Made by a program: the position numbers and the translations under genes
Origin: Auanema rhodensis
Taxonomy: Eukaryota; Animalia; Nematoda
Length of the DNA: 64,000 nt
Direction of reading: 5' to 3'
Assembly (NCBI GenBank): GCA_964057225.1
Contig: OZ059895.1
Location: 3,596,001 to 3,660,000 of the forward strand
Shown here: one piece after another, positions 1 to 64,000 of the stretch
How the letters are laid out: every line of letters begins with the position of its first letter
How positions within the stretch are numbered: position 1 is the stretch's first letter
The notes under the pieces: generated by a model
The model's database searches: none
What the model saw: the letters and a program-made list of their open reading frames with translations, nothing else
Told to the model about the DNA's origin: nothing

Positions 1-60
1 GCAGCACAGGTTACTCTTAAATAATGAACTGACCGACTAATCAGACACGGATCTTTCCTA

Positions 61-127
61 GTTCTGTTGCTTGAATGGATGTTTTCCTACGTAGGCTAGT
101 AAAACATGCCCTTCAAAGCATCAGAAC
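61..127. other. 67-nt imperfect inverted repeat (hairpin/cruciform potential), present in every monomer at monomer positions 61-127
   Basis: The left arm gttctgttgctt-gaatgg-atgttttccta aligns with the reverse complement of the right arm gttctgatgctttgaagggcatgttttacta: 26 pairs, 3 mismatches, 2 single-base bulges, loop cgtaggc. Confidence 0.9.
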
Positions 128-139
128 ATGTGATCACAT
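86..139. other. Perfect palindromes cctacgtagg (86-95) and atgtgatcacat (128-139) in the consensus monomer
   Basis: Both are self reverse-complementary. The second is broken in gtgaCc, gtTatc and gatcaG variant copies. Confidence 0.9.
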
Positions 140-294
140 TCCAATTTTTTTGTATCTATTTTGTAAAGATAGTAATATATCATATGTTGAACACTATGTT
201 GGAAAGATTTTAATTCAGATTTTCTAACTTTTATTCAGTTTGTTTTTTAAACTTTGATTAAGAACTTTGATTTTTGTACACCCATAAATTATAC

Positions 295-503
295 GCAGCA
301 CAGGTTACCCTTAAATAATGAACTGACCGACTAATCAGACATGGATCTTTCCTAGTTCTGTTGCTTGAATGGATGTTTTCCTACGTAGGCTAGTAAAACA
401 TGCCCTTCAAAACATCAGAACATGTGATCACATTCCAATTTTTTTGTATCTGTTTTGTAAAGATAGTAATAAACTTTGATTTTTGTACACCCATAAATTA
501 TAC
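295..503 (+). repeat. Representative 209-bp short monomer (lacks monomer positions 178-262, 85 bp)
   Basis: The junction reads gatagtaata|aactttgattttt, whereas long copies have tatcatatg...ttgattaag between these. Starts at 295 and 504. Confidence 0.97.
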
Positions 504-658
504 GCAGCACAGGTTACCCTTAAATAATGAACTGACCGACTAATCAGACATGGATCTTTCCTAGTTCTGTTGCTTGAATGGATGTTTTCCTACGTAGGCT
601 AGTAAAACATGCCCTTCAAAGCATCAGAACATGTGATCACATTCCAATTTTTCTGTAT

Positions 659-675
659 CTATCTTGTAAAGATAG
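659..675. other. Short stem-loop ctatctt-gta-aagatag (monomer positions 156-172), present in each monomer
   Basis: ctatctt is the exact reverse complement of aagatag, with a 3-nt loop. Confidence 0.85.
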
Positions 676-2136
676 TAATAAACTTTGATTTTTGTACACC
701 CATAAATTATACGCAGCACAGGTTACCCTTAAATAATGAACTGACCGACTAATCAGACATGGATCTTTCCAAGTTCTGTTGCTTGAACGGATGTTTTCCT
801 ACGTAGGCTAGTAAAACATGCCCTTCAAAGCATCAGAACATGTGATCACATTCCAATTTTTTTGTATCTATTTTGTAAAGATAGTAATATATCATATGTT
901 GAACACTATGTTGGAAAGATTTTAATTCAGATTTTCTAACTTTTATTCAGTTTGTTTTTTAAACTTTGATTAAGAACTTTGATTTTTGTACACCCATAAA
1001 TTATACGCAGCACAGGTTACCCTTAAATAATGAACTGACCGACTAATCAGACATGGATCTTTCCTAGTTCTGTTGCTTGAATGGATGTTTTCCTACGTAG
1101 GCTAGTAAAACATGCCCTTCAAAACATCAGAACATGTGATCACATTCCAATTTTTTTGTATCTGTTTTGTAAAGATAGTAATAAACTTTGATTTTTGTAC
1201 ACCCATAAATTATACGCAGCACAGGTTACCCTTAAATAATGAACTGACCGACTAATCAGACATGGATCTTTCCTAGTTCTGTTGCTTGAATGGATGTTTT
1301 CCTACGTAGGCTAGTAAAACATGCCCTTCAAAGCATCAGAACATGTGATCACATTCCAATTTTTCTGTATCTATCTTGTAAAGATAGTAATAAACTTTGA
1401 TTTTTGTACACCCATAAATTATACGCAGCACAGGTTACCCTTAAATAATGAACTGACCGACTAATCAGACATGGATCTTTCCAAGTTCTGTTGCTTGAAC
1501 GGATGTTTTCCTACGTAGGCTAGTAAAACATGCCCTTCAAAGCATCAGAACATGTGATCACATTCCAATTTTTTTGTATCTATTTTGTAAAGATAGTAAT
1601 ATATCATATGTTGAACACTATGTTGGAAAGATTTTAATTCAGATTTTCTAACTTTTATTCAGTTTGTTTTTTAAACTTTGATTAAGAACTTTGATTTTTG
1701 TACACCCATAAATTATACGCAGCACAGGTTACCCTTAAATAATGAACTGACCGACTAATCAGACATGGATCTTTCCTAGTTCTGTTGCTTGAATGGATGT
1801 TTTCCTACGTAGGCTAGTAAAACATGCCCTTCAAAACATCAGAACATGTGATCACATTCCAATTTTTTTGTATCTGTTTTGTAAAGATAGTAATAAACTT
1901 TGATTTTTGTACACCCATAAATTATACGCAGCACAGGTTACCCTTAAATAATGAACTGACCGACTAATCAGACATGGATCTTTCCAAGTTCTGTTGCTTG
2001 AATGGATGTTTTCCTACGTAGGCTAGTAAAACATGCCCTTCAAAGCATCAGAACATGTGATCACATTCCAATTTTTTTGTATCTATCTTGTAAAGATAGT
2101 AATAAACTTTGATTTTTGTACACCCATAAATTATAC

Positions 2137-2431
2137 GCAGCACAGGTTACCCTTAAATAATGAACTGACCGACTAATCAGACATGGATCTTTCCAAGTTC
2201 TGTTGCTTGAACGGATGTTTTCCTACGTAGGCTAGTAAAACATGCCCTTCAAAGCATCAGAACATGTGACCACATTCCAATTTTTTTGTATCTATCTTGT
2301 AAAGATAGTAATATATCATATGTTGAACACTATGTTGGAAAGATTTTAATTCAGATTTTTTCAACTTTCACTCAGTTTGTTTTCTAAACTTTGATTAAGA
2401 ACCTTGTTGTTTGTACACCCATAAAATATAC
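2137..2431 (+). repeat. Representative 295-bp monomer, tail type B (ttcaactttcactcag...accttgttgtttg...aaaatatac); type C has accttgagttttg...aaattatac
   Basis: Starts at 2137 and 2432. The tail differs from type A at about 9 positions including a 1-bp indel. Confidence 0.95.
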
Positions 2432-5400
2432 GCAGCACAGGTTACCCTTAAATAATGAACTGACCGTCTAATCAGACATGGATCTTCCCAAGTTCTGTTG
2501 CTTGAATGGATGTTTTCCTACGTAGGCTAGTAAAACATGCCCTTCAAAGCATCAGAACATGTGATCACATTCCAATTTTTTTGTATCTATCTTGTAAAGA
2601 TAGTAATAAACTTTGATTTTTGTACACCCATAAATTATACGCAGCACAGGTTACTCTTAAATAATGAACTGACCGACTAATCAGACACGGATCTTTCCTA
2701 GTTCTGTTGCTTGAATGGATGTTTTCCTACGTAGGCTAGTAAAACATGCCCTTCAAAGCATCAGAACATGTGATCACATTCCAATTTTTTTGTATCTATT
2801 TTGTAAAGATAGTAATATATCATATGTTGAACACTATGTTGGAAAGATTTTAATTCAGATTTTCTAACTTTTATTCAGTTTGTTTTTTAAACTTTGATTA
2901 AGAACTTTGATTTTTGTACACCCATAAATTATACGCAGCACAGGTTACCCTTAAATAATGAACTGACCGACTAATCAGACATGGATCTTTCCTAGTTCTG
3001 TTGCTTGAATGGATGTTTTCCTACGTAGGCTAGTAAAACATGCCCTTCAAAACATCAGAACATGTGATCACATTCCAATTTTTTTGTATCTGTTTTGTAA
3101 AGATAGTAATAAACTTTGATTTTTGTACACCCATAAATTATACGCAGCACAGGTTACCCTTAAATAATGAACTGACCGACTAATCAGACATGGATCTTTC
3201 CTAGTTCTGTTGCTTGAATGGATGTTTTCCTACGTAGGCTAGTAAAACATGCCCTTCAAAGCATCAGAACATGTGATCACATTCCAATTTTTCTGTATCT
3301 ATCTTGTAAAGATAGTAATAAACTTTGATTTTTGTACACCCATAAATTATACGCAGCACAGGTTACCCTTAAATAATGAACTGACCGACTAATCAGACAT
3401 GGATCTTTCCAAGTTCTGTTGCTTGAACGGATGTTTTCCTACGTAGGCTAGTAAAACATGCCCTTCAAAGCATCAGAACATGTGATCACATTCCAATTTT
3501 TTTGTATCTATTTTGTAAAGATAGTAATATATCATATGTTGAACACTATGTTGGAAAGATTTTAATTCAGATTTTCTAACTTTTATTCAGTTTGTTTTTT
3601 AAACTTTGATTAAGAACTTTGATTTTTGTACACCCATAAATTATACGCAGCACAGGTTACCCTTAAATAATGAACTGACCGACTAATCAGACATGGATCT
3701 TTCCTAGTTCTGTTGCTTGAATGGATGTTTTCCTACGTAGGCTAGTAAAACATGCCCTTCAAAACATCAGAACATGTGATCACATTCCAATTTTTTTGTA
3801 TCTGTTTTGTAAAGATAGTAATAAACTTTGATTTTTGTACACCCATAAATTATACGCAGCACAGGTTACCCTTAAATAATGAACTGACCGACTAATCAGA
3901 CATGGATCTTTCCTAGTTCTGTTGCTTGAATGGATGTTTTCCTACGTAGGCTAGTAAAACATGCCCTTCAAAGCATCAGAACATGTGATCACATTCCAAT
4001 TTTTCTGTATCTATCTTGTAAAGATAGTAATAAACTTTGATTTTTGTACACCCATAAATTATACGCAGCACAGGTTACCCTTAAATAATGAACTGACCGA
4101 CTAATCAGACATGGATCTTTCCAAGTTCTGTTGCTTGAACGGATGTTTTCCTACGTAGGCTAGTAAAACATGCCCTTCAAAGCATCAGAACATGTGATCA
4201 CATTCCAATTTTTTTGTATCTATTTTGTAAAGATAGTAATATATCATATGTTGAACACTATGTTGGAAAGATTTTAATTCAGATTTTCTAACTTTTATTC
4301 AGTTTGTTTTTTAAACTTTGATTAAGAACTTTGATTTTTGTACACCCATAAATTATACGCAGCACAGGTTACCCTTAAATAATGAACTGACCGACTAATC
4401 AGACATGGATCTTTCCTAGTTCTGTTGCTTGAATGGATGTTTTCCTACGTAGGCTAGTAAAACATGCCCTTCAAAACATCAGAACATGTGATCACATTCC
4501 AATTTTTTTGTATCTGTTTTGTAAAGATAGTAATAAACTTTGATTTTTGTACACCCATAAATTATACGCAGCACAGGTTACCCTTAAATAATGAACTGAC
4601 CGACTAATCAGACATGGATCTTTCCAAGTTCTGTTGCTTGAATGGATGTTTTCCTACGTAGGCTAGTAAAACATGCCCTTCAAAGCATCAGAACATGTGA
4701 TCACATTCCAATTTTTTTGTATCTATCTTGTAAAGATAGTAATAAACTTTGATTTTTGTACACCCATAAATTATACGCAGCACAGGTTACCCTTAAATAA
4801 TGAACTGACCGACTAATCAGACATGGATCTTTCCAAGTTCTGTTGCTTGAACGGATGTTTTCCTACGTAGGCTAGTAAAACATGCCCTTCAAAGCATCAG
4901 AACATGTGACCACATTCCAATTTTTTTGTATCTATCTTGTAAAGATAGTAATATATCATATGTTGAACACTATGTTGGAAAGATTTTAATTCAGATTTTT
5001 TCAACTTTCACTCAGTTTGTTTTCTAAACTTTGATTAAGAACCTTGTTGTTTGTACACCCATAAAATATACGCAGCACAGGTTACCCTTAAATAATGAAC
5101 TGACCGTCTAATCAGACATGGATCTTCCCAAGTTCTGTTGCTTGAATGGATGTTTTCCTACGTAGGCTAGTAAAACATGCCCTTCAAAGCATCAGAACAT
5201 GTGATCACATTCCAATTTTTTTGTATCTATCTTGTAAAGATAGTAATAAACTTTGATTTTTGTACACCCATAAATTATACGCAGCACAGGTTACTCTTAA
5301 ATAATGAACTGACCGACTAATCAGACACGGATCTTTCCTAGTTCTGTTGCTTGAATGGATGTTTTCCTACGTAGGCTAGTAAAACATGCCCTTCAAAGCA

Positions 5401-7503
5401 TCAGAACATGTGATCACATTCCAATTTTTTTGTATCTATTTTGTAAAGATAGTAATATATCATATGTTGAACACTATGTTGGAAAGATTTTAATTCAGAT
5501 TTTCTAACTTTTATTCAGTTTGTTTTTTAAACTTTGATTAAGAACTTTGATTTTTGTACACCCATAAATTATACGCAGCACAGGTTACCCTTAAATAATG
5601 AACTGACCGACTAATCAGACATGGATCTTTCCTAGTTCTGTTGCTTGAATGGATGTTTTCCTACGTAGGCTAGTAAAACATGCCCTTCAAAACATCAGAA
5701 CATGTGATCACATTCCAATTTTTTTGTATCTGTTTTGTAAAGATAGTAATAAACTTTGATTTTTGTACACCCATAAATTATACGCAGCACAGGTTACCCT
5801 TAAATAATGAACTGACCGACTAATCAGACATGGATCTTTCCTAGTTCTGTTGCTTGAATGGATGTTTTCCTACGTAGGCTAGTAAAACATGCCCTTCAAA
5901 GCATCAGAACATGTGATCACATTCCAATTTTTCTGTATCTATCTTGTAAAGATAGTAATAAACTTTGATTTTTGTACACCCATAAATTATACGCAGCACA
6001 GGTTACCCTTAAATAATGAACTGACCGACTAATCAGACATGGATCTTTCCAAGTTCTGTTGCTTGAACGGATGTTTTCCTACGTAGGCTAGTAAAACATG
6101 CCCTTCAAAGCATCAGAACATGTGATCACATTCCAATTTTTTTGTATCTATTTTGTAAAGATAGTAATATATCATATGTTGAACACTATGTTGGAAAGAT
6201 TTTAATTCAGATTTTCTAACTTTTATTCAGTTTGTTTTTTAAACTTTGATTAAGAACTTTGATTTTTGTACACCCATAAATTATACGCAGCACAGGTTAC
6301 CCTTAAATAATGAACTGACCGACTAATCAGACATGGATCTTTCCTAGTTCTGTTGCTTGAATGGATGTTTTCCTACGTAGGCTAGTAAAACATGCCCTTC
6401 AAAACATCAGAACATGTGATCACATTCCAATTTTTTTGTATCTGTTTTGTAAAGATAGTAATAAACTTTGATTTTTGTACACCCATAAATTATACGCAGC
6501 ACAGGTTACCCTTAAATAATGAACTGACCGACTAATCAGACATGGATCTTTCCTAGTTCTGTTGCTTGAATGGATGTTTTCCTACGTAGGCTAGTAAAAC
6601 ATGCCCTTCAAAGCATCAGAACATGTGATCACATTCCAATTTTTCTGTATCTATCTTGTAAAGATAGTAATATATCATATGTTGAACACTATGTTGGAAA
6701 GATTTTAATTCAGATTTTCTCAACTTTCACTCAGTTTGTTTTCTAAACTTTGATTAAGAACCTTGAGTTTTGTACACCCATAAATTATACGCAGCACAGG
6801 TTACCCTTAAATAATGAACTGATCGACTAATCAGACATGGATCTTCCCAAGTTCTGTTGCTTGAATGGATGTTTTCCTACGTAGGCTAGTAAAACATGCC
6901 CTTCAAAGCATCAGAACATGTGATCACATTCCAATTTTTTTGTATCTATCTTGTAAAGATAGTAATAAACTTTGATTTTTGTACACCCATAAATTATACG
7001 CAGCACAGGTTACCCTTAAATAATGAACTGACCGACTAATCAGACATGGATCTTTCCAAGTTCTGTTGCTTGAACGGATGTTTTCCTACGTAGGCTAGTA
7101 AAACATGCCCTTCAAAGCATCAGAACATGTGACCACATTCCAATTTTTTTGTATCTATCTTGTAAAGATAGTAATATATCATATGTTGAACACTATGTTG
7201 GAAAGATTTTAATTCAGATTTTTTCAACTTTCACTCAGTTTGTTTTCTAAACTTTGATTTAGAACCTTGTTGTTTGTACACCCATAAAATATAGGCAGCA
7301 CAGGTTACCCTTAAATAATGAACTGACCGTCTAATCAGACATGGATCTTCCCAAGTTCTGTTGCTTGAATGGATGTTTTCCTACGTAGGCTAGTAAAACA
7401 TGCCCTTCAAAGCATCAGAACATGTGATCACATTCCAATTTTTTTGTATCTATCTTGTAAAGATAGTAATAAACTTTGATTTTTGTACACCCATAAATTA
7501 TAC

Positions 7504-7739
7504 GCAGCACAGGTTACCCTTAAATAATGAACTGACCGACTAATCAGACATGGATCTTTCCAAGTTCTGTTGCTTGAACGGATGTTTTCCTACGTAGGCT
7601 AGTAAAACATGCCCTTCAAAGCATCAGAACATGTGATCACATTCCAATTTTTTTGTATCTATCTTGTAAAGATAGTAATATATCATATGTTGAACACTAT
7701 GTTGGAAAGATTTTAATTCAGATTTTCGAACTTTTATAC
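7504..7739 (+). repeat. 236-bp monomer (58-bp deletion of monomer positions 235-292)
   Basis: The junction reads cgaacttttat|acgcagc. The deleted segment is flanked by ttat microhomology. Confidence 0.95.
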
Positions 7740-9125
7740 GCAGCACAGGTTACCCTTAATTAATGAACTGACCGACTAATCAGACATGGATCTTTCCAAG
7801 TTCTGTTGCTTGAATGGATGTTTTCCTACGTAGGCTAGTAAAACATGCCCTTCAAAGCATCAGAACATGTGATCACATTCCAATTTTTTTGTATCTATCT
7901 TGTAAAGATAGTAATATATCATATGTTGAACACTATGTTGGAAAGATTTTAATTCAGATTTTCTAACTTTTAATCAGTTTGTTTTTTAAACTTTGATTAA
8001 GAACTTTGATTTTTGTACACCCATAAATTATACGCAGCACAGGTTACCCTTAAATAATGAACTGACCGACTAATCAGACATGGTTCTTTCCTAGTTCTGT
8101 TGCTTGAATGGATGTTTTCCTACGTAGGCTAGTAAAACATGCCCTTCAAAGCATCAGAACATGTGATCACATTCCAATTTTTTCGTATCTATCTTGTAAA
8201 GATAGTAATAAACTTTGATTTTTGTACACCCATAAATTATACGCAGCACAGGTTACCCTTAAATAATGAACTGACCGACTAATCATACATGGATCTTTCC
8301 AAGTTCTGTTGCTTGAACGGATGTTTTCCTACGTAGGCTAGTAAAACATGCCCTTCAAAGCATCAGAACATGTGATCACATTCCAATTTTTTTGTATCTA
8401 TCTTGTAAAGATAGTAATATATCATATGTTGAACACTATGTTGGAAAGATTTTAATTCAGATTTTCGAACTTTTATTCAGTTTGTTTTTTAAACTTTGAT
8501 TAAGAACTTTGATTTTTGTACACCCATAAATTATACGCAGCACAGGTTACCCTTAATTAATGAACTGACCGACTAATCAGACATGGATCTTTCCAAGTTC
8601 TGTTGCTTGAACGGATGTTTTCCTACGTAGGCTAGTAAAACATGCCCTTCAAAGCATCAGAACATGTGACCACATTCCAATTTTTTTGTATCTATCTTGT
8701 AAAGATAGTAATATATCATATGTTGAACACTATGTTGGAAAGATTTTAATTCAGATTTTTTCAACTTTCACTCAGTTTGTTTTCTAAACTTTGATTAAGA
8801 ACCTTGTTGTTTGTACACCCATAAAATATACGCAGCACAGGTTACCCTTAAATAATGAACTGACCGACTAATCAGACATGGATCTTTCCTAGTTCTGTTG
8901 CTTGAACGGATGTTTTCCTACGTAGGCTAGTAAAACATGCCCTTCAAAGCATCAGAACATGTGATCACATTCCAATTTTTTTGTATCTATCTTGTAAAGA
9001 TAGTAATATATCATATGTTGAACACTATGTTGGAAAGATTTTAATTCAGATTTTCGAACTTTTATTCAGTTTGTTTTTTAAACTTTGATTAAGAACTTTG
9101 ATTTTTGTACACCCATAAATTATAC

Positions 9126-12100
9126 GCAGCACAGGTTACCCTTAATTAATGAACTGACCGACTAATCAGACATGGATCTTTCCAAGTTCTGTTGCTTGAA
9201 CGGATGTTTTCCTACGTAGGCTAGTAAAACATGCCCTTCAAAGCATCAGAACATGTGACCACATTCCAATTTTTTTGTATCTATCTTGTAAAGATAGTAA
9301 TATATCATATGTTGAACACTATGTTGGAAAGATTTTAATTCAGATTTTTTCAACTTTCACTCAGTTTGTTTTCTAAACTTTGATTAAGAACCTTGTTGTT
9401 TGTACACCCATAAAATATACGCAGCACAGGTTACCCTTAAATAATGAACTGACCGACTAATCAGACATGGATCTTTCCTAGTTCTGTTGCTTGAATGGAT
9501 GTTTTCCTACGTAGGCTTTTAAAACATGCCCTTCAAAGCATCAGAACATGTGATCACATTCCAATTTTTTTGTATCTATCTTGTAAAGATAGTAATAAAC
9601 TTTGATTTTTGTACACCCATAAATTATACGCAGCACAGGTTACCCTTAAATAATGAACTGACCGTCTAATCAGACATGGATCTTCCAAAGTTCTGTTGCT
9701 TGAATGGATGTTTTCCTACGTAGGCTAGTAAAACATGCCCTTCAAAGCATCAGAACATGTGATCACATTCCAATTTTTTTGTATCTATCTTGTAAAGATA
9801 GTAATAAACTTTGATTTTTGTACACCCATAAATTATACGCAGCACAGGTTACCCTTAAATAATGAACTGACCGACTAATCAGACATGGATCTTTCCAAGT
9901 TCTGTTGCTTGAACGGATGTTTTCCTACGTAGGCTAGTAAAACATGCCCTTCAAAGCATCAGAACATGTGACCACATTCCTATTTTTTTGTATCTATCTT
10001 GTAAAGATAGTAATATATCATATGTTGAACACTATGTTGGAAAGATTTTAATTCAGATTTTTTCAACTTTCACTCAGTTTGTTTTCTAAACTTTGATTAA
10101 GAACCTTGTTGTTTGTACACCCATAAAATATACGCAGCACAGGTTACCCTTAAATAATGAACTGACCGTCTAATCAGACATGGATCTTACCAAGTTCTGT
10201 TGCTTGAATGGATGTTTTCCTACGTAGGCTAGTAAAACATGCCCTTCAAAGCATCAGAACATGTGATCACATTCCAATTTTTTTGTATCTATCTTGTAAA
10301 GATAGTAATATATCATATGTTGAACACTATGTTGGAAAGATTTTAATTCAGATTTTCTAACTTTTATTCAGTTTGTTTTTTAAACTTTGATTAAGAACTT
10401 TGATTTTTGTACACCCATAAATTATACGCAGCACAGGTTACCCTTAAATAATGAACTGACCGACTAATCAGACATGGATCTTTCCTAGTTCTGTTGCTTG
10501 AATGGATGTTTTCCTACGTAGGCTAGTAAAACATGCCCTTCAAAGCATCAGAACATGTGATCACATTCCAATTTTTTTGTATCTATCTTGTAAAGATAGT
10601 AATATATCATATGTTGAACACTATGTTGGAAAGATTTTAATTCAGATTTTTTCAACTTTCACTCAGTTTGTTTTCTAAACTTTGATTAAGAACCTTGAGT
10701 TTTGTACACCCATAAATTATACGCAGCACAGGTTACCCTTAAATAATGAACTGACCGACTAATCAGACATGGATCTTCCCAAGTTCTGTTGCTTGAATGG
10801 ATGTTTTCCTACGTAGGCTAGTAAAACATGCCCTTCAAAGCATCAGAACATGTGATCACATTCCAATTTTTTTGTATCTATCTTGTAAAGATAGTAATAA
10901 ACTTTGATTTTTGTACACCCATAAATTATACGCAGCACAGGTTACCCTTAAATAATGAACTGACCGACTAATCAGACATGGATCTTTCCAAGTTCTGTTG
11001 CTTGAACGGATGTTTTCCTACGTAGGCTAGTAAAACATGCCCTTCAAAGCATCAGAACATGTGACCACATTCCAATTTTTTTGTATCTATCTTGTAAAGA
11101 TAGTAATATATCATATGTTGAACACTATGTTGGAAAGATTTTAATTCAGATTTTTTCAACTTTCACTCAGTTTGTTTTCTAAACTTTGATTAAGAACCTT
11201 GTTGTTTGTACACCCATAAAATATACGCAGCACAGGTTACCCTTAAATAATGAACTGACCGTCTAATCAGACATGGATCTTCCCAAGTTCTGTTGCTTGA
11301 ATGGATGTTTTCCTACGTAGGCTAGTAAAACATGCCCTTCAAAGCATCAGAACATGTGATCACATTCCAATTTTTTTGTATCTATCTTGTAAAGATAGTA
11401 ATAAACTTTGATTTTTGTACACCCATAAATTATACGCAGCACAGGTTACCCTTAAATAATGAACTGACCGACTAATCAGACACGGATCTTTCCTAGTTCT
11501 GTTGCTTGAATGGATGTTTTCCTACGTAGGCTAGTAAAACATGCCCTTCAAAGCATCAGAACATGTGATCACATTCCAATTTTTTTGTATCTATTTTGTA
11601 AAGATAGTAATATATCATATGTTGAACACTATGTTGGAAAGATTTTAATTCAGATTTTCTAACTTTTATTCAGTTTGTTTTTTAAACTTTGATTAAGAAC
11701 TTTGATTTTTGTACACCCATAAATTATACGCAGCACAGGTTACCCTTAAATAATGAACTGACCGACTAATCAGACATGGATCTTTCCTAGTTCTGTTGCT
11801 TGAATGGATGTTTTCCTACGTAGGCTAGTAAAACATGCCCTTCAAAACATCAGAACATGTGATCACATTCCAATTTTTTTGTATCTGTTTTGTAAAGATA
11901 GTAATAAACTTTGATTTTTGTACACCCATAAATTATACGCAGCACAGGTTACCCTTAAATAATGAACTGACCGACTAATCAGACATGGATCTTTCCTAGT
12001 TCTGTTGCTTGAATGGATGTTTTCCTACGTAGGCTAGTAAAACATGCCCTTCAAAGCATCAGAACATGTGATCACATTCCAATTTTTCTGTATCTATCTT

Positions 12101-15100
12101 GTAAAGATAGTAATATATCATATGTTGAACACTATGTTGGAAAGATTTTAATTCAGATTTTCTCAACTTTCACTCAGTTTGTTTTCTAAACTTTGATTAA
12201 GAACCTTGAGTTTTGTACACCCATAAATTATACGCAGCACAGGTTACCCTTAAATAATGAACTGACCGACTAATCAGACATGGATCTTTCCTAGTTCTGT
12301 TGCTTGAATGGATGTTTTCCTACGTAGGCTAGTAAAACATGCCCTTCAAAGCATCAGAACATGTGATCACATTCCAATTTTTTTGTATCTATCTTGTAAA
12401 GATAGTAATAAACTTTGATTTTTGTACACCCATAAATTATACGCAGCACAGGTTACCCTTAAATAATGAACTGACCGACTAATCAGACATGGATCTTTCC
12501 TAGTTCTGTTGCTTGAATGGATGTTTTCCTACGTAGGCTAGTAAAACATGCCCTTCAAAGCATCAGAACATGTGATCACATTCCAATTTTTCTGTATCTA
12601 TCTTGTAAAGATAGTAATATATCATATGTTGAACACTATGTTGGAAAGATTTTAATTCAGATTTTCTCAACTTTCACTCAGTTTGTTTTTTAAACTTTGA
12701 TTAAGAACTTTGATTTTTGTACACCCATAAATTATACGCAGCACAGGTTACCCTTAAATAATGAACTGACCGACTAATCAGACATGGATCTTTCCTAGTT
12801 CTGTTGCTTGAATGGATGTTTTCCTACGTAGGCTAGTAAAACATGCCCTTCAAAGCATCAGAACATGTGATCACATTCCAATTTTTTTGTATCTATCTTG
12901 TAAAGATAGTAATAAACTTTGATTTTTGTACACCCATAAATTATACGCAGCACAGGTTACCCTTAAATAATGAACTGACCGACTAATCAGACACGGATCT
13001 TTCCTAGTTCTGTTGCTTGAATGGATGTTTTCCTACGTAGGCTAGTAAAACATGCCCTTCAAAGCATCAGAACATGTGATCACATTCCAATTTTTTTGTA
13101 TCTATTTTGTAAAGATAGTAATATATCATATGTTGAACACTATGTTGGAAAGATTTTAATTCAGATTTTCTAACTTTTATTCAGTTTGTTTTTTAAACTT
13201 TGATTAAGAACTTTGATTTTTGTACACCCATAAATTATACGCAGCACAGGTTACCCTTAAATAATGAACTGACCGACTAATCAGACATGGATCTTTCCTA
13301 GTTCTGTTGCTTGAATGGATGTTTTCCTACGTAGGCTAGTAAAACATGCCCTTCAAAGCATCAGAACATGTGATCACATTCCAATTTTTTTGTATCTATC
13401 TTGTAAAGATAGTAATATATCATATGTTGAACACTATGTTGGAAAGATTTTAATTCAGATTTTTTCAACTTTCACTCAGTTTGTTTTCTAAACTTTGATT
13501 AAGAACCTTGAGTTTTGTACACCCATAAATTATACGCAGCACAGGTTACCCTTAAATAATGAACTGACCGACTAATCAGACATGGATCTTCCCAAGTTCT
13601 GTTGCTTGAATGGATGTTTTCCTACGTAGGCTAGTAAAACATGCCCTTCAAAGCATCAGAACATGTGATCACATTCCAATTTTTTTGTATCTATCTTGTA
13701 AAGATAGTAATAAACTTTGATTTTTGTACACCCATAAATTATACGCAGCACAGGTTACCCTTAAATAATGAACTGACCGACTAATCAGACATGGATCTTT
13801 CCAAGTTCTGTTGCTTGAACGGATGTTTTCCTACGTAGGCTAGTAAAACATGCCCTTCAAAGCATCAGAACATGTGACCACATTCCAATTTTTTTGTATC
13901 TATCTTGTAAAGATAGTAATATATCATATGTTGAACACTATGTTGGAAAGATTTTAATTCAGATTTTTTCAACTTTCACTCAGTTTGTTTTCTAAACTTT
14001 GATTAAGAACCTTGTTGTTTGTACACCCATAAAATATACGCAGCACAGGTTACCCTTAAATAATGAACTGACCGTCTAATCAGACATGGATCTTCCCAAG
14101 TTCTGTTGCTTGAATGGATGTTTTCCTACGTAGGCTAGTAAAACATGCCCTTCAAAGCATCAGAACATGTGATCACATTCCAATTTTTTTGTATCTATCT
14201 TGTAAAGATAGTAATAAACTTTGATTTTTGTACACCCATAAATTATACGCAGCACAGGTTACCCTTAAATAATGAACTGACCGACTAATCAGACACGGAT
14301 CTTTCCTAGTTCTGTTGCTTGAATGGATGTTTTCCTACGTAGGCTAGTAAAACATGCCCTTCAAAGCATCAGAACATGTGATCACATTCCAATTTTTTTG
14401 TATCTATTTTGTAAAGATAGTAATATATCATATGTTGAACACTATGTTGGAAAGATTTTAATTCAGATTTTCTAACTTTTATTCAGTTTGTTTTTTAAAC
14501 TTTGATTAAGAACTTTGATTTTTGTACACCCATAAATTATACGCAGCACAGGTTACCCTTAAATAATGAACTGACCGACTAATCAGACATGGATCTTTCC
14601 TAGTTCTGTTGCTTGAATGGATGTTTTCCTACGTAGGCTAGTAAAACATGCCCTTCAAAACATCAGAACATGTGATCACATTCCAATTTTTTTGTATCTG
14701 TTTTGTAAAGATAGTAATAAACTTTGATTTTTGTACACCCATAAATTATACGCAGCACAGGTTACCCTTAAATAATGAACTGACCGACTAATCAGACATG
14801 GATCTTTCCTAGTTCTGTTGCTTGAATGGATGTTTTCCTACGTAGGCTAGTAAAACATGCCCTTCAAAGCATCAGAACATGTGATCACATTCCAATTTTT
14901 CTGTATCTATCTTGTAAAGATAGTAATATATCATATGTTGAACACTATGTTGGAAAGATTTTAATTCAGATTTTCTCAACTTTCACTCAGTTTGTTTTCT
15001 AAACTTTGATTAAGAACCTTGAGTTTTGTACACCCATAAATTATACGCAGCACAGGTTACCCTTAAATAATGAACTGACCGACTAATCAGACATGGATCT

Positions 15101-18100
15101 TCCCAAGTTCTGTTGCTTGAATGGATGTTTTCCTACGTAGGCTAGTAAAACATGCCCTTCAAAGCATCAGAACATGTGATCACATTCCAATTTTTTTGTA
15201 TCTATCTTGTAAAGATAGTAATAAACTTTGATTTTTGTACACCCATAAATTATACGCAGCACAGGTTACCCTTAAATAATGAACTGACCGACTAATCAGA
15301 CATGGATCTTTCCAAGTTCTGTTGCTTGAACGGATGTTTTCCTACGTAGGCTAGTAAAACATGCCCTTCAAAGCATCAGAACATGTGACCACATTCCAAT
15401 TTTTTTGTATCTATCTTGTAAAGATAGTAATATATCATATGTTGAACACTATGTTGGAAAGATTTTAATTCAGATTTTTTCAACTTTCACTCAGTTTGTT
15501 TTCTAAACTTTGATTTAGAACCTTGTTGTTTGTACACCCATAAAATATAGGCAGCACAGGTTACCCTTAATTAATGAACTGACCGACTAATCAGACATGG
15601 ATCTTTCCAAGTTCTGTTGCTTGAACGGATGTTTTCCTACGTAGGCTAGTAAAACATGCCCTTCAAAGCATCAGAACATGTGACCACATTCCAATTTTTT
15701 TGTATCTATCTTGTAAAGATAGTAATATATCATATGTTGAACACTATGTTGGAAAGATTTTAATTCAGATTTTTTCAACTTTCACTCAGTTTGTTTTCTA
15801 AACTTTGATTAAGAACCTTGTTGTTTGTACACCCATAAAATATACGCAGCACAGGTTACCCTTAAATAATGAACTGACCGACTAATCAGACATGGATCTT
15901 TCCTAGTTCTGTTGCTTGAATGGATGTTTTCCTACGTAGGCTTTTAAAACATGCCCTTCAAAGCATCAGAACATGTGATCACATTCCAATTTTTTTGTAT
16001 CTATCTTGTAAAGATAGTAATAAACTTTGATTTTTGTACACCCATAAATTATACGCAGCACAGGTTACCCTTAAATAATGAACTGACCGTCTAATCAGAC
16101 ATGGATCTTCCAAAGTTCTGTTGCTTGAATGGATGTTTTCCTACGTAGGCTAGTAAAACATGCCCTTCAAAGCATCAGAACATGTGATCACATTCCAATT
16201 TTTTTGTATCTATCTTGTAAAGATAGTAATAAACTTTGATTTTTGTACACCCATAAATTATACGCAGCACAGGTTACCCTTAAATAATGAACTGACCGAC
16301 TAATCAGACATGGATCTTTCCAAGTTCTGTTGCTTGAACGGATGTTTTCCTACGTAGGCTAGTAAAACATGCCCTTCAAAGCATCAGAACATGTGACCAC
16401 ATTCCTATTTTTTTGTATCTATCTTGTAAAGATAGTAATATATCATATGTTGAACACTATGTTGGAAAGATTTTAATTCAGATTTTTTCAACTTTCACTC
16501 AGTTTGTTTTCTAAACTTTGATTAAGAACCTTGTTGTTTGTACACCCATAAAATATACGCAGCACAGGTTACCCTTAAATAATGAACTGACCGTCTAATC
16601 AGACATGGATCTTACCAAGTTCTGTTGCTTGAATGGATGTTTTCCTACGTAGGCTAGTAAAACATGCCCTTCAAAGCATCAGAACATGTGATCACATTCC
16701 AATTTTTTTGTATCTATCTTGTAAAGATAGTAATATATCATATGTTGAACACTATGTTGGAAAGATTTTAATTCAGATTTTCTAACTTTTATTCAGTTTG
16801 TTTTTTAAACTTTGATTAAGAACTTTGATTTTTGTACACCCATAAATTATACGCAGCACAGGTTACCCTTAAATAATGAACTGACCGACTAATCAGACAT
16901 GGATCTTTCCTAGTTCTGTTGCTTGAATGGATGTTTTCCTACGTAGGCTAGTAAAACATGCCCTTCAAAGCATCAGAACATGTGATCACATTCCAATTTT
17001 TTTGTATCTATCTTGTAAAGATAGTAATATATCATATGTTGAACACTATGTTGGAAAGATTTTAATTCAGATTTTTTCAACTTTCACTCAGTTTGTTTTC
17101 TAAACTTTGATTAAGAACCTTGAGTTTTGTACACCCATAAATTATACGCAGCACAGGTTACCCTTAAATAATGAACTGACCGACTAATCAGACATGGATC
17201 TTCCCAAGTTCTGTTGCTTGAATGGATGTTTTCCTACGTAGGCTAGTAAAACATGCCCTTCAAAGCATCAGAACATGTGATCACATTCCAATTTTTTTGT
17301 ATCTATCTTGTAAAGATAGTAATAAACTTTGATTTTTGTACACCCATAAATTATACGCAGCACAGGTTACCCTTAAATAATGAACTGACCGACTAATCAG
17401 ACATGGATCTTTCCAAGTTCTGTTGCTTGAACGGATGTTTTCCTACGTAGGCTAGTAAAACATGCCCTTCAAAGCATCAGAACATGTGACCACATTCCAA
17501 TTTTTTTGTATCTATCTTGTAAAGATAGTAATATATCATATGTTGAACACTATGTTGGAAAGATTTTAATTCAGATTTTTTCAACTTTCACTCAGTTTGT
17601 TTTCTAAACTTTGATTAAGAACCTTGTTGTTTGTACACCCATAAAATATACGCAGCACAGGTTACCCTTAAATAATGAACTGACCGTCTAATCAGACATG
17701 GATCTTCCCAAGTTCTGTTGCTTGAATGGATGTTTTCCTACGTAGGCTAGTAAAACATGCCCTTCAAAGCATCAGAACATGTGATCACATTCCAATTTTT
17801 TTGTATCTATCTTGTAAAGATAGTAATAAACTTTGATTTTTGTACACCCATAAATTATACGCAGCACAGGTTACCCTTAAATAATGAACTGACCGACTAA
17901 TCAGACACGGATCTTTCCTAGTTCTGTTGCTTGAATGGATGTTTTCCTACGTAGGCTAGTAAAACATGCCCTTCAAAGCATCAGAACATGTGATCACATT
18001 CCAATTTTTTTGTATCTATTTTGTAAAGATAGTAATATATCATATGTTGAACACTATGTTGGAAAGATTTTAATTCAGATTTTCTAACTTTTATTCAGTT

Positions 18101-18713
18101 TGTTTTTTAAACTTTGATTAAGAACTTTGATTTTTGTACACCCATAAATTATACGCAGCACAGGTTACCCTTAAATAATGAACTGACCGACTAATCAGAC
18201 ATGGATCTTTCCTAGTTCTGTTGCTTGAATGGATGTTTTCCTACGTAGGCTAGTAAAACATGCCCTTCAAAACATCAGAACATGTGATCACATTCCAATT
18301 TTTTTGTATCTGTTTTGTAAAGATAGTAATAAACTTTGATTTTTGTACACCCATAAATTATACGCAGCACAGGTTACCCTTAAATAATGAACTGACCGAC
18401 TAATCAGACATGGATCTTTCCTAGTTCTGTTGCTTGAATGGATGTTTTCCTACGTAGGCTAGTAAAACATGCCCTTCAAAGCATCAGAACATGTGATCAC
18501 ATTCCAATTTTTCTGTATCTATCTTGTAAAGATAGTAATATATCATATGTTGAACACTATGTTGGAAAGATTTTAATTCAGATTTTCTCAACTTTCACTC
18601 AGTTTGTTTTCTAAACTTTGATTAAGAACCTTGAGTTTTGTACACCCATAAATTATACGCAGCACAGGTTACCCTTAAATAATGAACTGACCGACTAATC
18701 AGACATGGATCTT
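9126..18713 (+). repeat. Dispersed ~3.16-kb duplication (9126-12288 vs 15551-18713, offset 6425)
   Basis: Rare markers ttaattaatg, ggctttt, ttccaaag, cctattt, ttaccaa and cacgg all recur at exactly +6425 (e.g. 9981/16406, 10189/16614, 11483/17908). Confidence 0.88.
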
Positions 18714-20672
18714 CCCAAGTTCTGTTGCTTGAATGGATGTTTTCCTACGTAGGCTAGTAAAACATGCCCTTCAAAGCATCAGAACATGTGATCACATTCC
18801 AATTTTTTTGTATCTATCTTGTAAAGATAGTAATAAACTTTGATTTTTGTACACCCATAAATTATACGCAGCACAGGTTACCCTTAAATAATGAACTGAC
18901 CGACTAATCAGACATGGATCTTTCCAAATTCTGTTGCTTGAACGGATGTTTTCCTACGTAGGCTAGTAAAACATGCCCTTCAAAGCATCAGAACATGTGA
19001 CCACATTCCAATTTTTTTGTATCTATCTTGTAAAGATAGTAATATATCATATGTTGAACACTATGTTGGAAAGATTTTAATTCAGATTTTTTCAACTTTC
19101 ACTCAGTTTGTTTTCTAAACTTTGATTTAGAACCTTGTTGTTTGTACACCCATAAAATATAGGCAGCACAGGTTACCCTTAAATAATGAACTGACCGTCT
19201 AATCAGACATGGATCTTCCCAAGTTCTGTTGCTTGAATGGATGTTTTCCTACGTAGGCTAGTAAAACATGCCCTTCAAAGCATCAGAACATGTGATCACA
19301 TTCCAATTTTTTTGTATCTATCTTGTAAAGATAGTAATAAACTTTGATTTTTGTACACCCATAAATTATACGCAGCACAGGTTACCCTTAAATAATGAAC
19401 TGACCGACTAATCAGACATGGATCTTTCCAAGTTCTGTTGCTTGAACGGATGTTTCCCTACGTAGGCTAGTAAAACATGCCCTTCAAAGCATCAGAACAT
19501 GTGATCACATTCCAATTTTTTTGTATCTATCTTGTAAAGATAGTAATATATCATATGTTGAACACTATGTTGGAAAGATTTTAATTCAGATTTTCGAACT
19601 TTTATTCAGTTTGTTTTTTAAACTTTGATTAAGAACTTTGATTTTTGTACACCCATAAATTATACGCAGCACAGGTTACCCTTAAATAATGAACTGACCG
19701 ACTAATCAGACACGGATCTTTCCTAGTTCTGTTGCTTGAATGGATGTTTTCCTACGTAGGCTAGTAAAACATGCCCTTCAAAGCATCAGAACATGTGATC
19801 ACATTCCAATTTTTTTGTATCTATTTTGTAAAGATAGTAATATATCATATGTTGAACACTATGTTGGAAAGATTTTAATTCAGATTTTCTAACTTTTATT
19901 CAGTTTGTTTTTTAAACTTTGATTAAGAACTTTGATTTTTGTACACCCATAAATTATACGCAGCACAGGTTACCCTTAAATAATGAACTGACCGACTAAT
20001 CAGACATGGATCTTTCCTAGTTCTGTTGCTTGAATGGATGTTTTCCTACGTAGGCTAGTAAAACATGCCCTTCAAAACATCAGAACATGTGATCACATTC
20101 CAATTTTTTTGTATCTGTTTTGTAAAGATAGTAATAAACTTTGATTTTTGTACACCCATAAATTATACGCAGCACAGGTTACCCTTAAATAATGAACTGA
20201 CCGACTAATCAGACATGGATCTTTCCTAGTTCTGTTGCTTGAATGGATGTTTTCCTACGTAGGCTAGTAAAACATGCCCTTCAAAGCATCAGAACATGTG
20301 ATCACATTCCAATTTTTCTGTATCTATCTTGTAAAGATAGTAATATATCATATGTTGAACACTATGTTGGAAAGATTTTAATTCAGATTTTCTCAACTTT
20401 CACTCAGTTTGTTTTCTAAACTTTGATTAAGAACCTTGAGTTTTGTACACCCATAAATTATACGCAGCACAGGTTACCCTTAAATAATGAACTGACCGAC
20501 TAATCAGACATGGATCTTCCCAAGTTCTGTTGCTTGAATGGATGTTTTCCTACGTAGGCTATTAAAACATGCCCTTCAAAGCATCAGAACATGTGATCAC
20601 ATTCCAATTTTTTTGTATCTATCTTGTAAAGATAGTAATAAACTTTGATTTTTGTACACCCATAAATTATAC

Positions 20673-21589
20673 GCAGCACAGGTTACCCTTAAATAATGAA
20701 CTGACCGACTAATCAGACATGGATCTTTCCAAGTTCTGTTGCTTGAACGGATGTTTTCCTACGTAGGCTAGTAAAACATGCCCTTCAAAGCATCAGAACA
20801 TGTGATCACATTCCAATTTTTTTGTATCTATCTTGTAAAGATAGTAATATATCATATGTTGAACACTATGTTGGAAAGATTTTAATTCAGATTTTCGAAC
20901 TTTTATACGCAGCACAGGTTACCCTTAATTAATGAACTGACCGACTAATCAGACATGGATCTTTCCAAGTTCTGTTGCTTGAATGGATGTTTTCCTACGT
21001 AGGCTAGTAAAACATGCCCTTCAAAGCATCAGAACATGTGATCACATTCCAATTTTTTTGTATCTATCTTGTAAAGATAGTAATATATCATATGTTGAAC
21101 ACTATGTTGGAAAGATTTTAATTCAGATTTTCGAACTTTTATACGCAGCACAGGTTACCCTTAATTAATGAACTGACCGACTAATCAGACATGGATCTTT
21201 CCAAGTTCTGTTGCTTGAATGGATGTTTTCCTACGTAGGCTAGTAAAACATGCCCTTCAAAGCATCAGAACATGTGATCACATTCCAATTTTTTTGTATC
21301 TATCTTGTAAAGATAGTAATAAACTTTGATTTTTGTACACCCATAAATTATACGCAGCACAGGTTACCCTTAAATAATGAACTGACCGACTAATCAGACA
21401 TGGATCTTTCCAAGTTCTGTTGCTTGAACGGATGTTTTCCTACGTAGGCTAGTAAAACATGCCCTTCAAAGCATCAGAACATGTGATCACATTCCAATTT
21501 TTTTGTATCTATCTTGTAAAGATAGTAATATATCATATGTTGAACACTATGTTGGAAAGATTTTAATTCAGATTTTCGAACTTTTATAC
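20673..21589 (+). repeat. Cluster of three 236-bp monomers (20673-20908, 20909-21144, 21354-21589) around one 209-bp monomer
   Basis: The same cgaacttttatacgcagc junction occurs at about 20905, 21141 and 21586. Confidence 0.93.
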
Positions 21590-24500
21590 GCAGCACAGGT
21601 TACCCTTAATTAATGAACTGACCGACTAATCAGACATGGATCTTTCCAAGTTCTGTTGCTTGAATGGATGTTTTCCTACGTAGACTAGTAAAACATGCCC
21701 TTCAAAGCATCAGAACATGTGATCACATTCCAATTTTTTTGTATCTATCTTGTAAAGATAGTAATATATCATATGTTGAACACTATGTTGGAAAGATTTT
21801 AATTCAGATTTTCTAACTTTTAATCAGTTTGTTTTTTAAACTTTGATTAAGAACTTTGATTTTTGTACACCCATAAATTATACGCAGCACAGGTTACCCT
21901 TAAATAATGAACTGACCGACTAATCAGACATGGTTCTTTCCTAGTTCTGTTGCTTGAATGGATGTTTTCCTACGTAGGCTAGTAAAACATGCCCTTCAAA
22001 GCATCAGAACATGTGATCACATTCCAATTTTTTCGTATCTATCTTGTAAAGATAGTAATAAACTTTGATTTTTGTACACCCATAAATTATACGCAGCACA
22101 GGTTACCCTTAAATAATGAACTGACCGACTAATCAGACATGGATCTTTCCAAGTTCTGTTGCATGAACGGATGTTTTCCTACGTAGGCTAGTAAAACATG
22201 CCCTTCAAAGCATCAGAACATGTGATCACATTCCAATTTTTTTGTATCTATCTTGTAAAGATAGTAATATATCATATGTTGAACACTATGTTGGAAAGAT
22301 TTTAATTCAGATTTTCGAACTTTTATTCAGTTTGTTTTTTAAACTTTGATTAAGAACTTTGATTTTTGTACACCCATAAATTATACGCAGCACAGGTTAC
22401 CCTTAATTAATGAACTGACCGACTAATCAGACATGGATCTTTCCAAGTTCTGTTGCTTGAACGGATGTTTTCCTACGTAGGCTAGTAAAACATGCCCTTC
22501 AAAGCATCAGAACATGTGACCACATTCCAATTTTTTTGTATCTATCTTGTAAAGATAGTAATATATCATATGTTGAACACTATGTTGGAAAGATTTTAAT
22601 TCAGATTTTTTCAACTTTCACTCAGTTTGTTTTCTAAACTTTGATTAAGAACCTTGTTGTTTGTACACCCATAAAATATACGCAGCACAGGTTACCCTTA
22701 AATAATGAACTGACCGACTAATCAGACATGGATCTTTCCTAGTTCTGTTGCTTGAATGGATGTTTTCCTACGTAGGCTTTTAAAACATGCCCTTCAAAGC
22801 ATCAGAACATGTGATCACATTCCAATTTTTTCGTATCTATCTTGTAAAGATAGTAATAAACTTTGATTTTTGTACACCCATAAATTATACGCAGCACAGG
22901 TTAGCCTTAAATAATGAACTGACCGACTAATCAGACATGGATCTTTCCTAGTTCTGTTGCTTGAATGGATGTTTTCCTACGTAGGCTTTTAAAACATGCC
23001 CTTCAAAGCATCAGAACATGTGATCACATTCCAATTTTTTCGTATCTATCTTGTAAAGATAGTAATAAACTTTGATTTTTGTACACCCATAAATTATACG
23101 CAGCACAGGTTACCCTTAAATAATGAACTGACCGACTAATCAGACATGGATCTTTCCAAGTTCTGTTGCTTGAACGGATGTTTTCCTACGTAGGCTAGTA
23201 AAACATGCCCTTCAAAGCATCAGAACATGTGATCACATTCCAATTTTTTTGTATCTATCTTGTAAAGATAGTAATATATCATATGTTGAACACTATGTTG
23301 GAAAGATTTTAATTCAGATTTTCGAACTTTTATTCAGTTTGTTTTTTAAACTTTGATTAAGAACTTTGATTTTTGTACACCCATAAATTATACGCAGCAC
23401 AGGTTACCCTTAATTAATGAACTGACCGACTAATCAGACATGGATCTTTCCAAGTTCTGTTGCTTGAACGGATGTTTTCCTACGTAGGCTAGTAAAACAT
23501 GCCCTTCAAAGCATCAGAACATGTGACCACATTCCAATTTTTTCGTATCTATCTTGTAAAGATAGTAATATATCATATGTTGAACACTATGTTGGAAAGA
23601 TTTTAATTCAGATTTTTTCAACTTTCACTCAGTTTGTTTTCTAAACTTTGATTAAGAACCTTGAGTTTTGTACACCCATAAATTATACGCAGCACAGGTT
23701 ACCCTTAAATAATGAACTGACCGACTAATCAGACATGGATCTTCCCAAGTTCTGTTGCTTGAATGGATGTTTTCCTACAGAGGCTAGTAAAACATGCCCT
23801 TCAAAGCATCAGAACATGTGATCACATTCCAATTTTTTTGTATCTATCTTGTAAAGATAGTAATAAACTTTGATTTTTGTACACCCATAAATTATACGCA
23901 GCACAGGTTACCCTTAAATAATGAACTGACCGACTAATCAGACATGGATCTTTCCAAGTTCTGTTGCTTGAACGGATGTTTTCCTACGTAGGCTAGTAAA
24001 ACATGCCCTTCAAAGCATCAGAACATGTGACCACATTCCAATTTTTTTGTATCTATCTTGTAAAGATAGTGATATATCATATGTTGAACACTATGTTCGA
24101 AAGATTTTAATTCAGATTTTTTCAACTTTCACTCAGTTTGTTTTCTAAACTTTGATTAAGAACCTTGTTGTTTGTACACCCATAAAATATACGCAGCACA
24201 GGTTACCCTTAAATAATGAACTGACCGACTAATCAGACATGGATCTTTCCTAGTTCTGTTGCTTCAATGGATGTTTTCCTACGTAGGCTAGTAAAACATG
24301 CCCTTCAAAGCATCAGAACATGTGATCACATTCCAATTTTTTTGTATCTATCTTGTAAAGATAGTAATATATCATATGTTGAACACTATGTTGGAAAGAT
24401 TTTAATTCAGATTTTCTAACTTTTAATCAGTTTGTTTTTTAAACTTTGATTAAGAACTTTGATTTTTGTACACCCATAAATTATACGCAGCACAGGTTAC

Positions 24501-53300: not shown

Positions 53301-53342
53301 CCCTTAAATAATGAACTGACCGACTAATCAGACATGGATCTT
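34837..53342 (+). repeat. ~9.1-kb near-tandem segmental duplication (34837-43940 vs 44239-53342, period 9402)
   Basis: Markers at +9402: 35390/44792, 37029/46431, 37321/46723, 38076/47478, 39292/48694, 40950/50352, 43022/52424, 43514/52916, 43559/52961. One discordant site was noticed (42546 c vs 51948 g). Confidence 0.9.
40690..43885 (+). repeat. 1596-bp tandem duplication (6-monomer unit) nested within the 9402-bp unit
   Basis: tttCatt at 40950/42546, caaAttt at 41426/43022, gtTatc at 41918/43514 and taatGaa at 41963/43559 all recur at +1596. Confidence 0.85.
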
Positions 53343-59300: not shown

Positions 59301-59391
59301 TCATATGTTGAACACTATGTTGGAAAGATTTTAATTCAGATTTTTTCAACTTTCACTCAGTTTGTTTTCTAAACTTTGATTAAGAACCTTG
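52765..59391 (+). repeat. ~2.8-kb duplication (52765-55572 vs 56584-59391, offset 3819)
   Basis: cAaattt at 54142/57961 and the T8 tract (g at 54742/58561) recur at +3819, with matching monomer order. Confidence 0.85.
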
Positions 59392-62300: not shown

Positions 62301-63407
62301 CCATAAATTATACGCAGCACAGGTTACCCTTAAATAATGATTTGACCGACTAATCAGACATGGATCTTTCCAAGTTCTGTTGCTTGAATGGATGTTTTCC
62401 TACGTAGGCTAGTAAAACATGCCCTTCAAAGCATCAGAACATGTGATCACATTCCAATTTTTTTGTATCTATCTTGTAAAGATAGTAATATATCATATGT
62501 TGAACACTATGTTGGAAAGATTTTAATTCAGATTTTTTCAACTTTCACTCAGTTTGTTTTCTAAACTTTGATTAAGAACCTTGTTGTTTGTACACCCATA
62601 AAATATACGCAGCACAGGTTACCCTTAAATAATGAACTGACCGTCTAATCAGACATGGATCTTCCCAAGTTCTGTTGCTTGAATGGATGTTTTCCTACGT
62701 AGGCTAGTAAAACATGCCCTTCAAAGCATCAGAACATGTGATCACATTCCAATTTTTTTGTATCTATCTTGTAAAGATAGTAATAAACTTTGATTTTTGT
62801 ACACCCATAAATTATACGCAGCACAGGTTACCCTTAAATAATGAACTGACCGACTAATCAGACATGGATCTTTCCAAGTTCTGTTGCTTGAACGGATGTT
62901 TTCCTACGTAGGCTAGTAAAACATGCCCTTCAAAGCATCAGAACATGTGACCACATTTCTATTTTTTTGTATCTATCTTGTAAAGATAGTAATATATCAT
63001 ATGTTGAACACTATGTTGGAAAGATTTTAATTCAGATTTTTTCAACTTTCACTCAGTTTGTTTTCTAAACTTTGATTAAGAACCTTGTTGTTTGTACACC
63101 CATAAAATATACGCAGCACAGGTTACCCTTAAATAATGAACTGACCGTCTAATCAGACATGGATCTTCCCAAGTTCTGTTGCTTGAACGGATGTTTTCCT
63201 ACGTAGGCTAGTAAAACATGCCCTTCAAAGCATCAGAACATGTGATCAGATTCCAATTTTTTTGTATCTATCTTGTAAAGATAGTAATATATCATATGTT
63301 GAACACTATGTTGGAAAGATTTTAATTCAGATTTTTTCAACTTTCACTCAGTTTGTTTTCTAAACTTTGATTAAGAACCTTGTTGTTTGTACACCCATAA
63401 AATATAC

Positions 63408-63713: not shown

Positions 63714-64000
63714 GCAGCACAGGTTACCCTTAAATAATGAACTGACCGACTAATCAGACATGGATCTTTCCTAGTTCTGTTGCTTGAATGAATGTTTTCC
63801 TACGTAGGCTAGTAAAACATGCCCTTCAAAGCATCAGAACATGTGATCACATTCCAATTTTTTTGTATCTATCTTGTAAAGATAGTAATATATCATATGT
63901 TGAACACTATGTTGGAAAGATTTTAATTCAGATTTTTTCAACTTTCACTCAGTTTGTTTTCTAAACTTTGATTAAGAACCTTGAGTTTTGTACACCCATA

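Follow-up and report, generated by a model that had tools for sequence, protein, structure and literature searches.

The analysed window, a stretch of 64,000 nucleotides (64 kb), is occupied by a single uninterrupted head-to-tail satellite (Table 1). Monomers were delimited by a conserved 14-mer anchor, and every start was found on the + strand. In total, we found 248 monomer anchors and 247 complete monomers, with lengths of 209 bp (101 copies), 294 or 295 bp (136 copies), 236 bp (4 copies), 291 bp (3 copies), 210 bp (2 copies) and 306 bp (1 copy). The identity from monomer to monomer is 95–99%, Tandem Repeats Finder gave 94–99% matches between adjacent copies, and the GC content of the array (33%) is flat along the window. 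Long and short monomers alternate, and the best self-match lags revealed higher-order periods of 504, 712, 2640, 6425 and 9402 bp. The period of 504 bp corresponds to one long and one short monomer (295+209), that of 712 bp to one long and two short monomers (294+209+209) and that of 9402 bp to 36 monomers. The segment between 32 and 40 kb matches itself at the lag of 9402 bp in 79% of the columns, and the higher-order units are nested. The window is thus satellite DNA, a long and near-identical, non-coding head-to-tail array with higher-order units.

Table 1. Positions of the satellite array and of the features of its first monomer within the 64-kb window.
Feature	Position	Strand	Remarks
Satellite array	1..64000	+	Anchor mapping, Tandem Repeats Finder, self-match lags
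Basal extension, 5′ half	47..53		ATGGATC in most monomers, ACGGATC in the first monomer
Hypervariable tract TTTCCTA	54..60		Polymorphism within the core peaks at columns 56 (T/C/A) and 59 (A/T)
67-nt imperfect inverted repeat (quasi-palindrome)	61..127 (first monomer)	both	Folds as RNA and as DNA
Perfect 10-bp palindrome CCTACGTAGG	86..95		Hairpin apex; direct reading
Perfect 12-bp palindrome ATGTGATCACAT	128..139		Directly 3′ of the stem base; contains a BclI site
Basal extension, 3′ half GATCACAT	132..139		Altered in 68 of 247 monomers
85-bp segment	178..262	+	Long (294/295 bp) monomers only; partly diverged copy of neighbouring monomer sequence

The long monomer consists of the short monomer plus the 85-bp segment. 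Within the long monomer, positions 156–176 and 194–214 are 81% alike, and AACTTTGATT is present twice, at 250–259 and at 263–272. Four monomers of 236 bp lack a further 58 bp. The possibility that the 85-bp segment is an intron was rejected, since it ends in TA..AG and the short forms are present in the DNA itself. No open reading frames of at least 60 aa were found in the 3 kb checked, and ARAGORN predicted no tRNA genes in these 3 kb. Across all 64 kb, no Rfam family was found at the gathering score, which includes miRNA, ribozyme, snRNA and 5S relics. A satellite derived from a ribozyme, a tRNA or a 5S gene was rejected because of these missing Rfam matches (hammerhead included) and the absence of ARAGORN genes.

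A preliminary description of this DNA had reported a 67-nt inverted repeat in every monomer, amounting to about 250 tandem foldbacks. Folding of positions 61–127 showed that the inverted repeat is real and forms a significant hairpin on both strands, as RNA and as DNA. The + strand forms 27 pairs with a 4-nt loop, and the − strand forms 25 pairs with a 7-nt loop. The RNA MFE is −25.2 kcal/mol on the + strand and −25.3 kcal/mol on the − strand, with z-scores of −5.72 and −5.52, respectively. None of 200 shuffles folded as well, so that the comparison with dinucleotide-shuffled sequence, which had been suggested together with the inverted repeat, places the hairpin far beyond chance. With DNA parameters, the fold energies are −14.6 (+) and −17.7 (−), with z-scores of −5.3 and −7.2. 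As a control for the selection of the best hairpin, the best 70-nt local fold was determined in 150 dinucleotide shuffles of the whole 294-nt monomer. The observed value of −26.9 compares to −14.2 ± 2.2 in the shuffles, which had a minimum of −21.5 (z −5.9). Moreover, local alignment of the monomer with its own reverse complement returned exactly positions 61–127, with a score of 58 compared to 21.6 ± 5.1. The fold of the whole monomer has z-scores of −0.84 and −0.59, showing that the remainder of the unit is not unusually structured, and the hairpin persists in these whole-monomer folds. Since the hairpin folds equally well from either strand, and with DNA parameters too, it bears the signature of a dyad in DNA rather than of an RNA made from one strand.

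The hairpin is kept in all 247 complete monomers, as the earlier estimate had it, in 18 sequence variants with MFE values from −20.2 to −29.6. Its arms are ~30 nt long and ~85% complementary, with a short spacer between them. The three mismatches and two bulges in the arms are identical in all monomers, and the imperfection of the palindrome therefore predates the amplification. The ubiquity of the hairpin itself carries little weight, because the monomers are 95–99% identical and any feature of the founder recurs in every copy. A hairpin in every unit is expected from recent amplification alone and is not evidence of function.

The sequences adjoining the stem are less regular. It had been proposed that the stem is extended at its base by pairing of positions 47–53 with 132–139. 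This basal extension is part of the MFE structure in most monomers, namely 146 of 247 on the + strand and 177 of 247 on the − strand, but it is weak: the 7 pairs of this lower stem lie beyond an 11-nt internal loop. The first monomer, with C48, does not form it in the + strand MFE structure. Furthermore, it is changed in 78 of the 247 monomers (32%), and none of these changes is compensated. The changes in its 3′ half are T134C (48 monomers), G132T (16 monomers) and C137G (4 monomers). In the majority monomer type, the hairpin with the basal extension reaches −29.5 kcal/mol (z −4.1). The 12-bp palindrome, which is altered in 68 of the 247 monomers, competes with the basal extension through self-pairing. 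On the − strand, G-U pairs in a 113-nt fold lengthen the lower stem to ~14 pairs (−35.2 kcal/mol, z −4.3), and this fold is the best available case for a pri-miRNA shape. The hypervariable tract was correctly placed at the 5′ base of the stem, with columns 56 and 59 just 5′ of it.

Within the hairpin, the commonest variant is T76C, which is found in 63 of the 247 monomers and, as the preliminary description had observed, falls on a position that is already mismatched (ΔΔG 0 on the + strand and −2.6 on the − strand). Pair-breaking variants, which it had also listed, do occur: G118A in 23 monomers (+4.7 kcal), C110G in 6 monomers and AG98-99TT in 4 monomers (G99T in 5). Among the 16 distinct substitutions in the hairpin, none is compensated, and no compensatory double change was found at any pair across the 247 monomers, the divergence of which is low. 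The rare C111A (2 monomers) pairs the T76 mismatch and changes the fold by −4.4 kcal/mol on both strands; this is the kind of change that template switching in quasi-palindromes would produce.

The variant density in the stem had been proposed as a further check on the hairpin, and here the answer is divided. The mean diversity is 0.0064 in the paired columns compared to 0.033 in the core flanks, making the stem the least variable part, but the site-count tests are not significant (P 0.08–0.4). Columns with a variant in at least 10 copies number 1 of 54 among the paired positions and 15 of 142 in the flanks (Fisher P 0.075), and the other site-count contrasts gave P values of 0.1–0.4. The 67 nt of the hairpin rank as the 5th lowest in diversity of 209 circular 67-nt windows, a weak rank given the heavy overlap of these windows. 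In addition, the substitutions that occur disturb the fold less than random ones with matched transition/transversion status do: the mean ΔΔG is 0.71 compared to 1.57 kcal/mol, with P values of 0.05 (RNA parameters) and 0.03 (DNA parameters). Together, the low stem diversity and the mild substitutions are thin but not nil hints of structural constraint or templated mutation. They could reflect selection on structure, which a purely passive relic would not experience.

The eliminated DNA of the nematode Auanema rhodense is reported to contain germline-restricted tandem repeats with units of 167–504 nt, and its discarded chromatin carries H3K9me3 (bioRxiv 10.64898/2026.08.27.747507). Arrays of tRNA and 5S genes are described in the same preprint. 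For the chromosome-specific repeat blocks of this species, a role in meiotic pairing was speculated, while neither hairpins nor small RNAs are mentioned in the preprint (10.64898/2026.08.27.747507). The satellite described here shares with the germline-restricted repeats the unit size (209/295 bp, within the published range) and the very long homogeneous arrays. It differs from them in that none of the four published FISH probes (AT-1, XR-1, XT-1 and XT-2) could be placed on either strand of the monomer, even with as many as 6 errors allowed. Provided that the DNA comes from A. rhodense, the satellite is either another named family of that species or an unnamed one. The break-site motif SFE (sequence for elimination) is a degenerate palindrome of 29 bp whose conserved core is GGC-N3-GCC (PMC13060919); we found 0 matches to this core in the 64 kb. 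Judging partly from the preprint, the repeat probably belongs to the germline-restricted, eliminated DNA of a nematode with programmed DNA elimination. We found no paper with the monomer sequence in a literature search.

Public sequencing runs were also searched for the monomer. Of the 14 runs listed, 12 contain the repeat at least partly, and none is recorded as RNA. In the main DNA run of organism A, the monomer has a summed word depth of about one million. Near-identical monomers (1–3 differences) are present under the organism labels B and C (runs X5 and X6) at depths of 422 and 76. These copies, with a depth about a thousand-fold lower than in organism A, could result from sample carry-over or represent a very recent shared repeat. 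Because they are near-identical, covariation from the public runs is uninformative. Run X12, which was guessed to be RNA, contains one 239-nt contig with a word depth of 5.3 that is a closed circle of the short-form monomer, and none of the sampled monomer words was found in the two sister runs of X12. This contig is equally explained by carry-over of the very abundant genomic DNA, and the contigs hold no strand, end or level information. The main DNA run of organism A, X1, also has low-depth contigs in which position 53 is joined to 132 and position 54 to 133, so that 78 nt with the entire hairpin are passed over. The 53-to-132 contigs are a putative minor monomer variant that is devoid of the dyad, either ancestral or produced by a hairpin-mediated deletion, and intervening letters between the two sides are conceivable.

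We consider it fairly probable that the locus is a non-genic satellite with a quasi-palindrome in its founder monomer that was spread by amplification, and that any role of the dyad is most likely played as DNA. The 67-bp quasi-palindrome, an inverted duplication or foldback of some age, would already have been part of the founder monomer. Every unit would then have received the dyad when the array was recently amplified in tandem and homogenised. Amplification from a quasi-palindromic founder would account for the presence of the hairpin, together with its shared mismatches and bulges, in each of the 247 complete monomers. When replication or repair exposes single strands, these may fold back on themselves (with about −15 to −18 kcal/mol under DNA parameters), which could favour slippage, template switching and unequal exchange and thereby the turnover of the array. 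The dyad may also supply a symmetric protein-binding site or a heterochromatin-prone site. The repeat, the fold and its presence in every monomer were observed, and miRNA-type evidence was absent, whereas a role of the dyad at the DNA level is what we infer.

Compatible with amplification from a quasi-palindromic founder is an origin from a tandemised MITE or foldback transposon, in which the dyad would represent the terminal inverted repeats of a captured small DNA transposon. This origin is possible, though we regard it as rather unlikely. The length and complementarity of the arms and their short spacer would suit such an element, as would the low-depth contigs that join 53 to 132 and lack the hairpin block. 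A precedent is Tetris, from which a satellite of Drosophila virilis arose (PMC4079207). The Tetris/TIR-220 satellites (PMC4079207) resemble the present one in their inverted-repeat material and in having both long and short monomers, which arose by duplication or deletion inside the unit; they differ in that no parent element, target-site duplication or dispersed copies were seen here in the window and the metagenome scan. The dyad has no flanking target-site duplication, and the segment missing from the minor variant (54–131) is not bounded by the inverted repeat itself. The metagenome scan, which fixed both stem ends and left the interior free, gave no diverged relatives of the hairpin but 13 loci with unrelated interiors. 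The earlier suggestion of a tandemised foldback or dyad-bearing satellite fits all observations.

In the same scan, a marine metagenome hairpin family was found that shares the 12-nt stem ends (L004:1212-1278, L005:9017-9081, L007:2506-2571, L008:4727-4792 and L012:1567-1632). This family has its own flanking inverted repeat (cattaacaac...gttgttaatg) and is unrelated to the satellite.

The array might instead act as a source of siRNAs, a reading that we hold to be doubtful. Read-through transcripts of the array would fold into ~27-bp stems or pair as sense and antisense, and Dicer together with RNA-dependent RNA polymerase would convert them into germline siRNAs, leading to H3K9me3 heterochromatin before the somatic discard. 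As RNA, either strand gives a stable stem that persists in the whole-monomer folds, and the 113-nt fold of the − strand adds the ~14 lower pairs described above. However, a mismatched 27-bp stem is a poor trigger for Dicer compared to the long dsRNA that bidirectional satellite transcription would yield in any case. The monomer contig in the one putative RNA run would fit transcription, but the RNA status of X12 is a guess, its depth is 5 and the sampled words are absent from both sister runs. The H3K9me3-positive state of the eliminated chromatin in A. rhodense is consistent with this reading, and satellite-derived small RNAs are known in Drosophila (PMC8321551). The Rsp and 1.688 satellites of Drosophila, which give rise to piRNAs and siRNAs (PMC8321551), are likewise satellite blocks of the germline with the potential to be transcribed and to supply silencing pathways, but their small RNAs are independent of a hairpin in each monomer. 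For Ascaris, it is stated that no small RNAs directed at the eliminated satellites were found (10.1101/2022.03.19.484980), which also argues against an siRNA source.

It is distinctly improbable that the locus provides a symmetric protein-binding site, with the dyad or the adjoining palindromes being recognised by a dimeric DNA-binding protein, for example for meiotic pairing. Perfect palindromes are present at the apex (CCTACGTAGG) and beside the stem (ATGTGATCACAT), the diversity of the stem is low, and roles resembling those of pairing centres were proposed for repeat blocks in the discussion of the A. rhodense preprint (10.64898/2026.08.27.747507). On the other hand, the 12-bp palindrome is the one altered in 68 of the 247 monomers, neither a known motif nor the break-site core GGC-N3-GCC was found, and the proposal is purely speculative.

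The boldest variant of the small-RNA readings would make the germline-restricted satellite a factory of hairpin RNA. Thousands of identical hairpins would be transcribed in germ cells and in embryos up to the 8–12-cell stage and diced to one dominant small RNA, which would either mark the block for heterochromatin and elimination or regulate early embryonic messages, before the locus is deleted from the soma. We consider this very improbable. To our knowledge, no RNA guide is known for programmed DNA elimination in animals.

The preliminary description had also considered a hugely amplified hairpin or small-RNA locus. Its size argument stands, as the length of 67 nt and the MFEI of 0.90 lie within the pre-miRNA range and the fold has a z-score of −5.7, but no Rfam family, no covariation, a weak and variable lower stem, a small loop and the 23 copies of G118A speak against it. 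An animal miRNA gene has a stem of ~33–35 bp, including a lower stem flanked by single strands, and a sizeable apical loop. Here, the apical loop has only 4–7 nt, and the upper stem of 25–27 bp would be too short for both the Drosha and the Dicer cuts. Rfam was searched with a permissive scan of 1.3 kb in addition to the gathering-score scan of all 64 kb. The arms match no described miRNA family, as had been noted from the letters: the best match in Rfam 15, mir-2831, reached 16.3 bits compared to a gathering score of 90 (E 6.8) and is noise. The upstream motif of nematode type-I piRNAs, CTGTTTCA, is absent as a consensus feature of the monomer; with at most 1 mismatch it has 4 matches, compared to ~100 expected by chance. 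A scan for bacterial-type promoters and terminators, a type of scan that is not applicable to a nematode, returned nothing.

Clusters such as miR-430 in fish, miR-427 in Xenopus and mir-35-41 in nematodes share with the satellite many head-to-tail hairpins of pre-miRNA size. In contrast to these clusters, the satellite matches no family and shows no strand asymmetry; its lower stem is weak and varies, its loop is small and its copy number is far higher. A miRNA mega-cluster of the miR-430/miR-427 type, in which each monomer would be a pri-miRNA cut by Drosha/Pasha and Dicer for bulk output in the germline or early embryo, is extremely improbable, since its pre-miRNA length, MFEI, z-score and the presence of the basal extension in the MFE structure of most monomers are set against a best Rfam match of 16 bits compared to a threshold of 90, the small loop, a 7-pair lower stem that is changed in 32% of the monomers and never compensated, equal folds on both strands, the amplification of the stem-breaking G118A to 23 copies and the absence of promoter-type and piRNA-type motifs. 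The miRNA reading is not supported by positive evidence, and the locus looks like an ordinary satellite around an imperfect palindrome.

Nematode chromosomes are holocentric, and the centromeric satellite that had been offered as another reading is therefore unlikely. Satellites with dyads or non-B structures, for example centromeric ones (PMC9070824), share with the present satellite a tandem repeat with a built-in inverted repeat that is able to form a hairpin or cruciform. They differ in that the dyad here is unusually long, with its arms of ~30 nt, and in that a point-centromere role is inapplicable in holocentric nematodes.

If germline small RNAs did arise from this locus before it is discarded, satellite hairpins would be linked to programmed DNA elimination; present evidence makes such a link unlikely. 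Should the dyad be no more than a structural relic, the locus would be one more palindrome-bearing satellite, yet still a useful and well-defined case for hairpin-driven slippage and template switching in megabase arrays.
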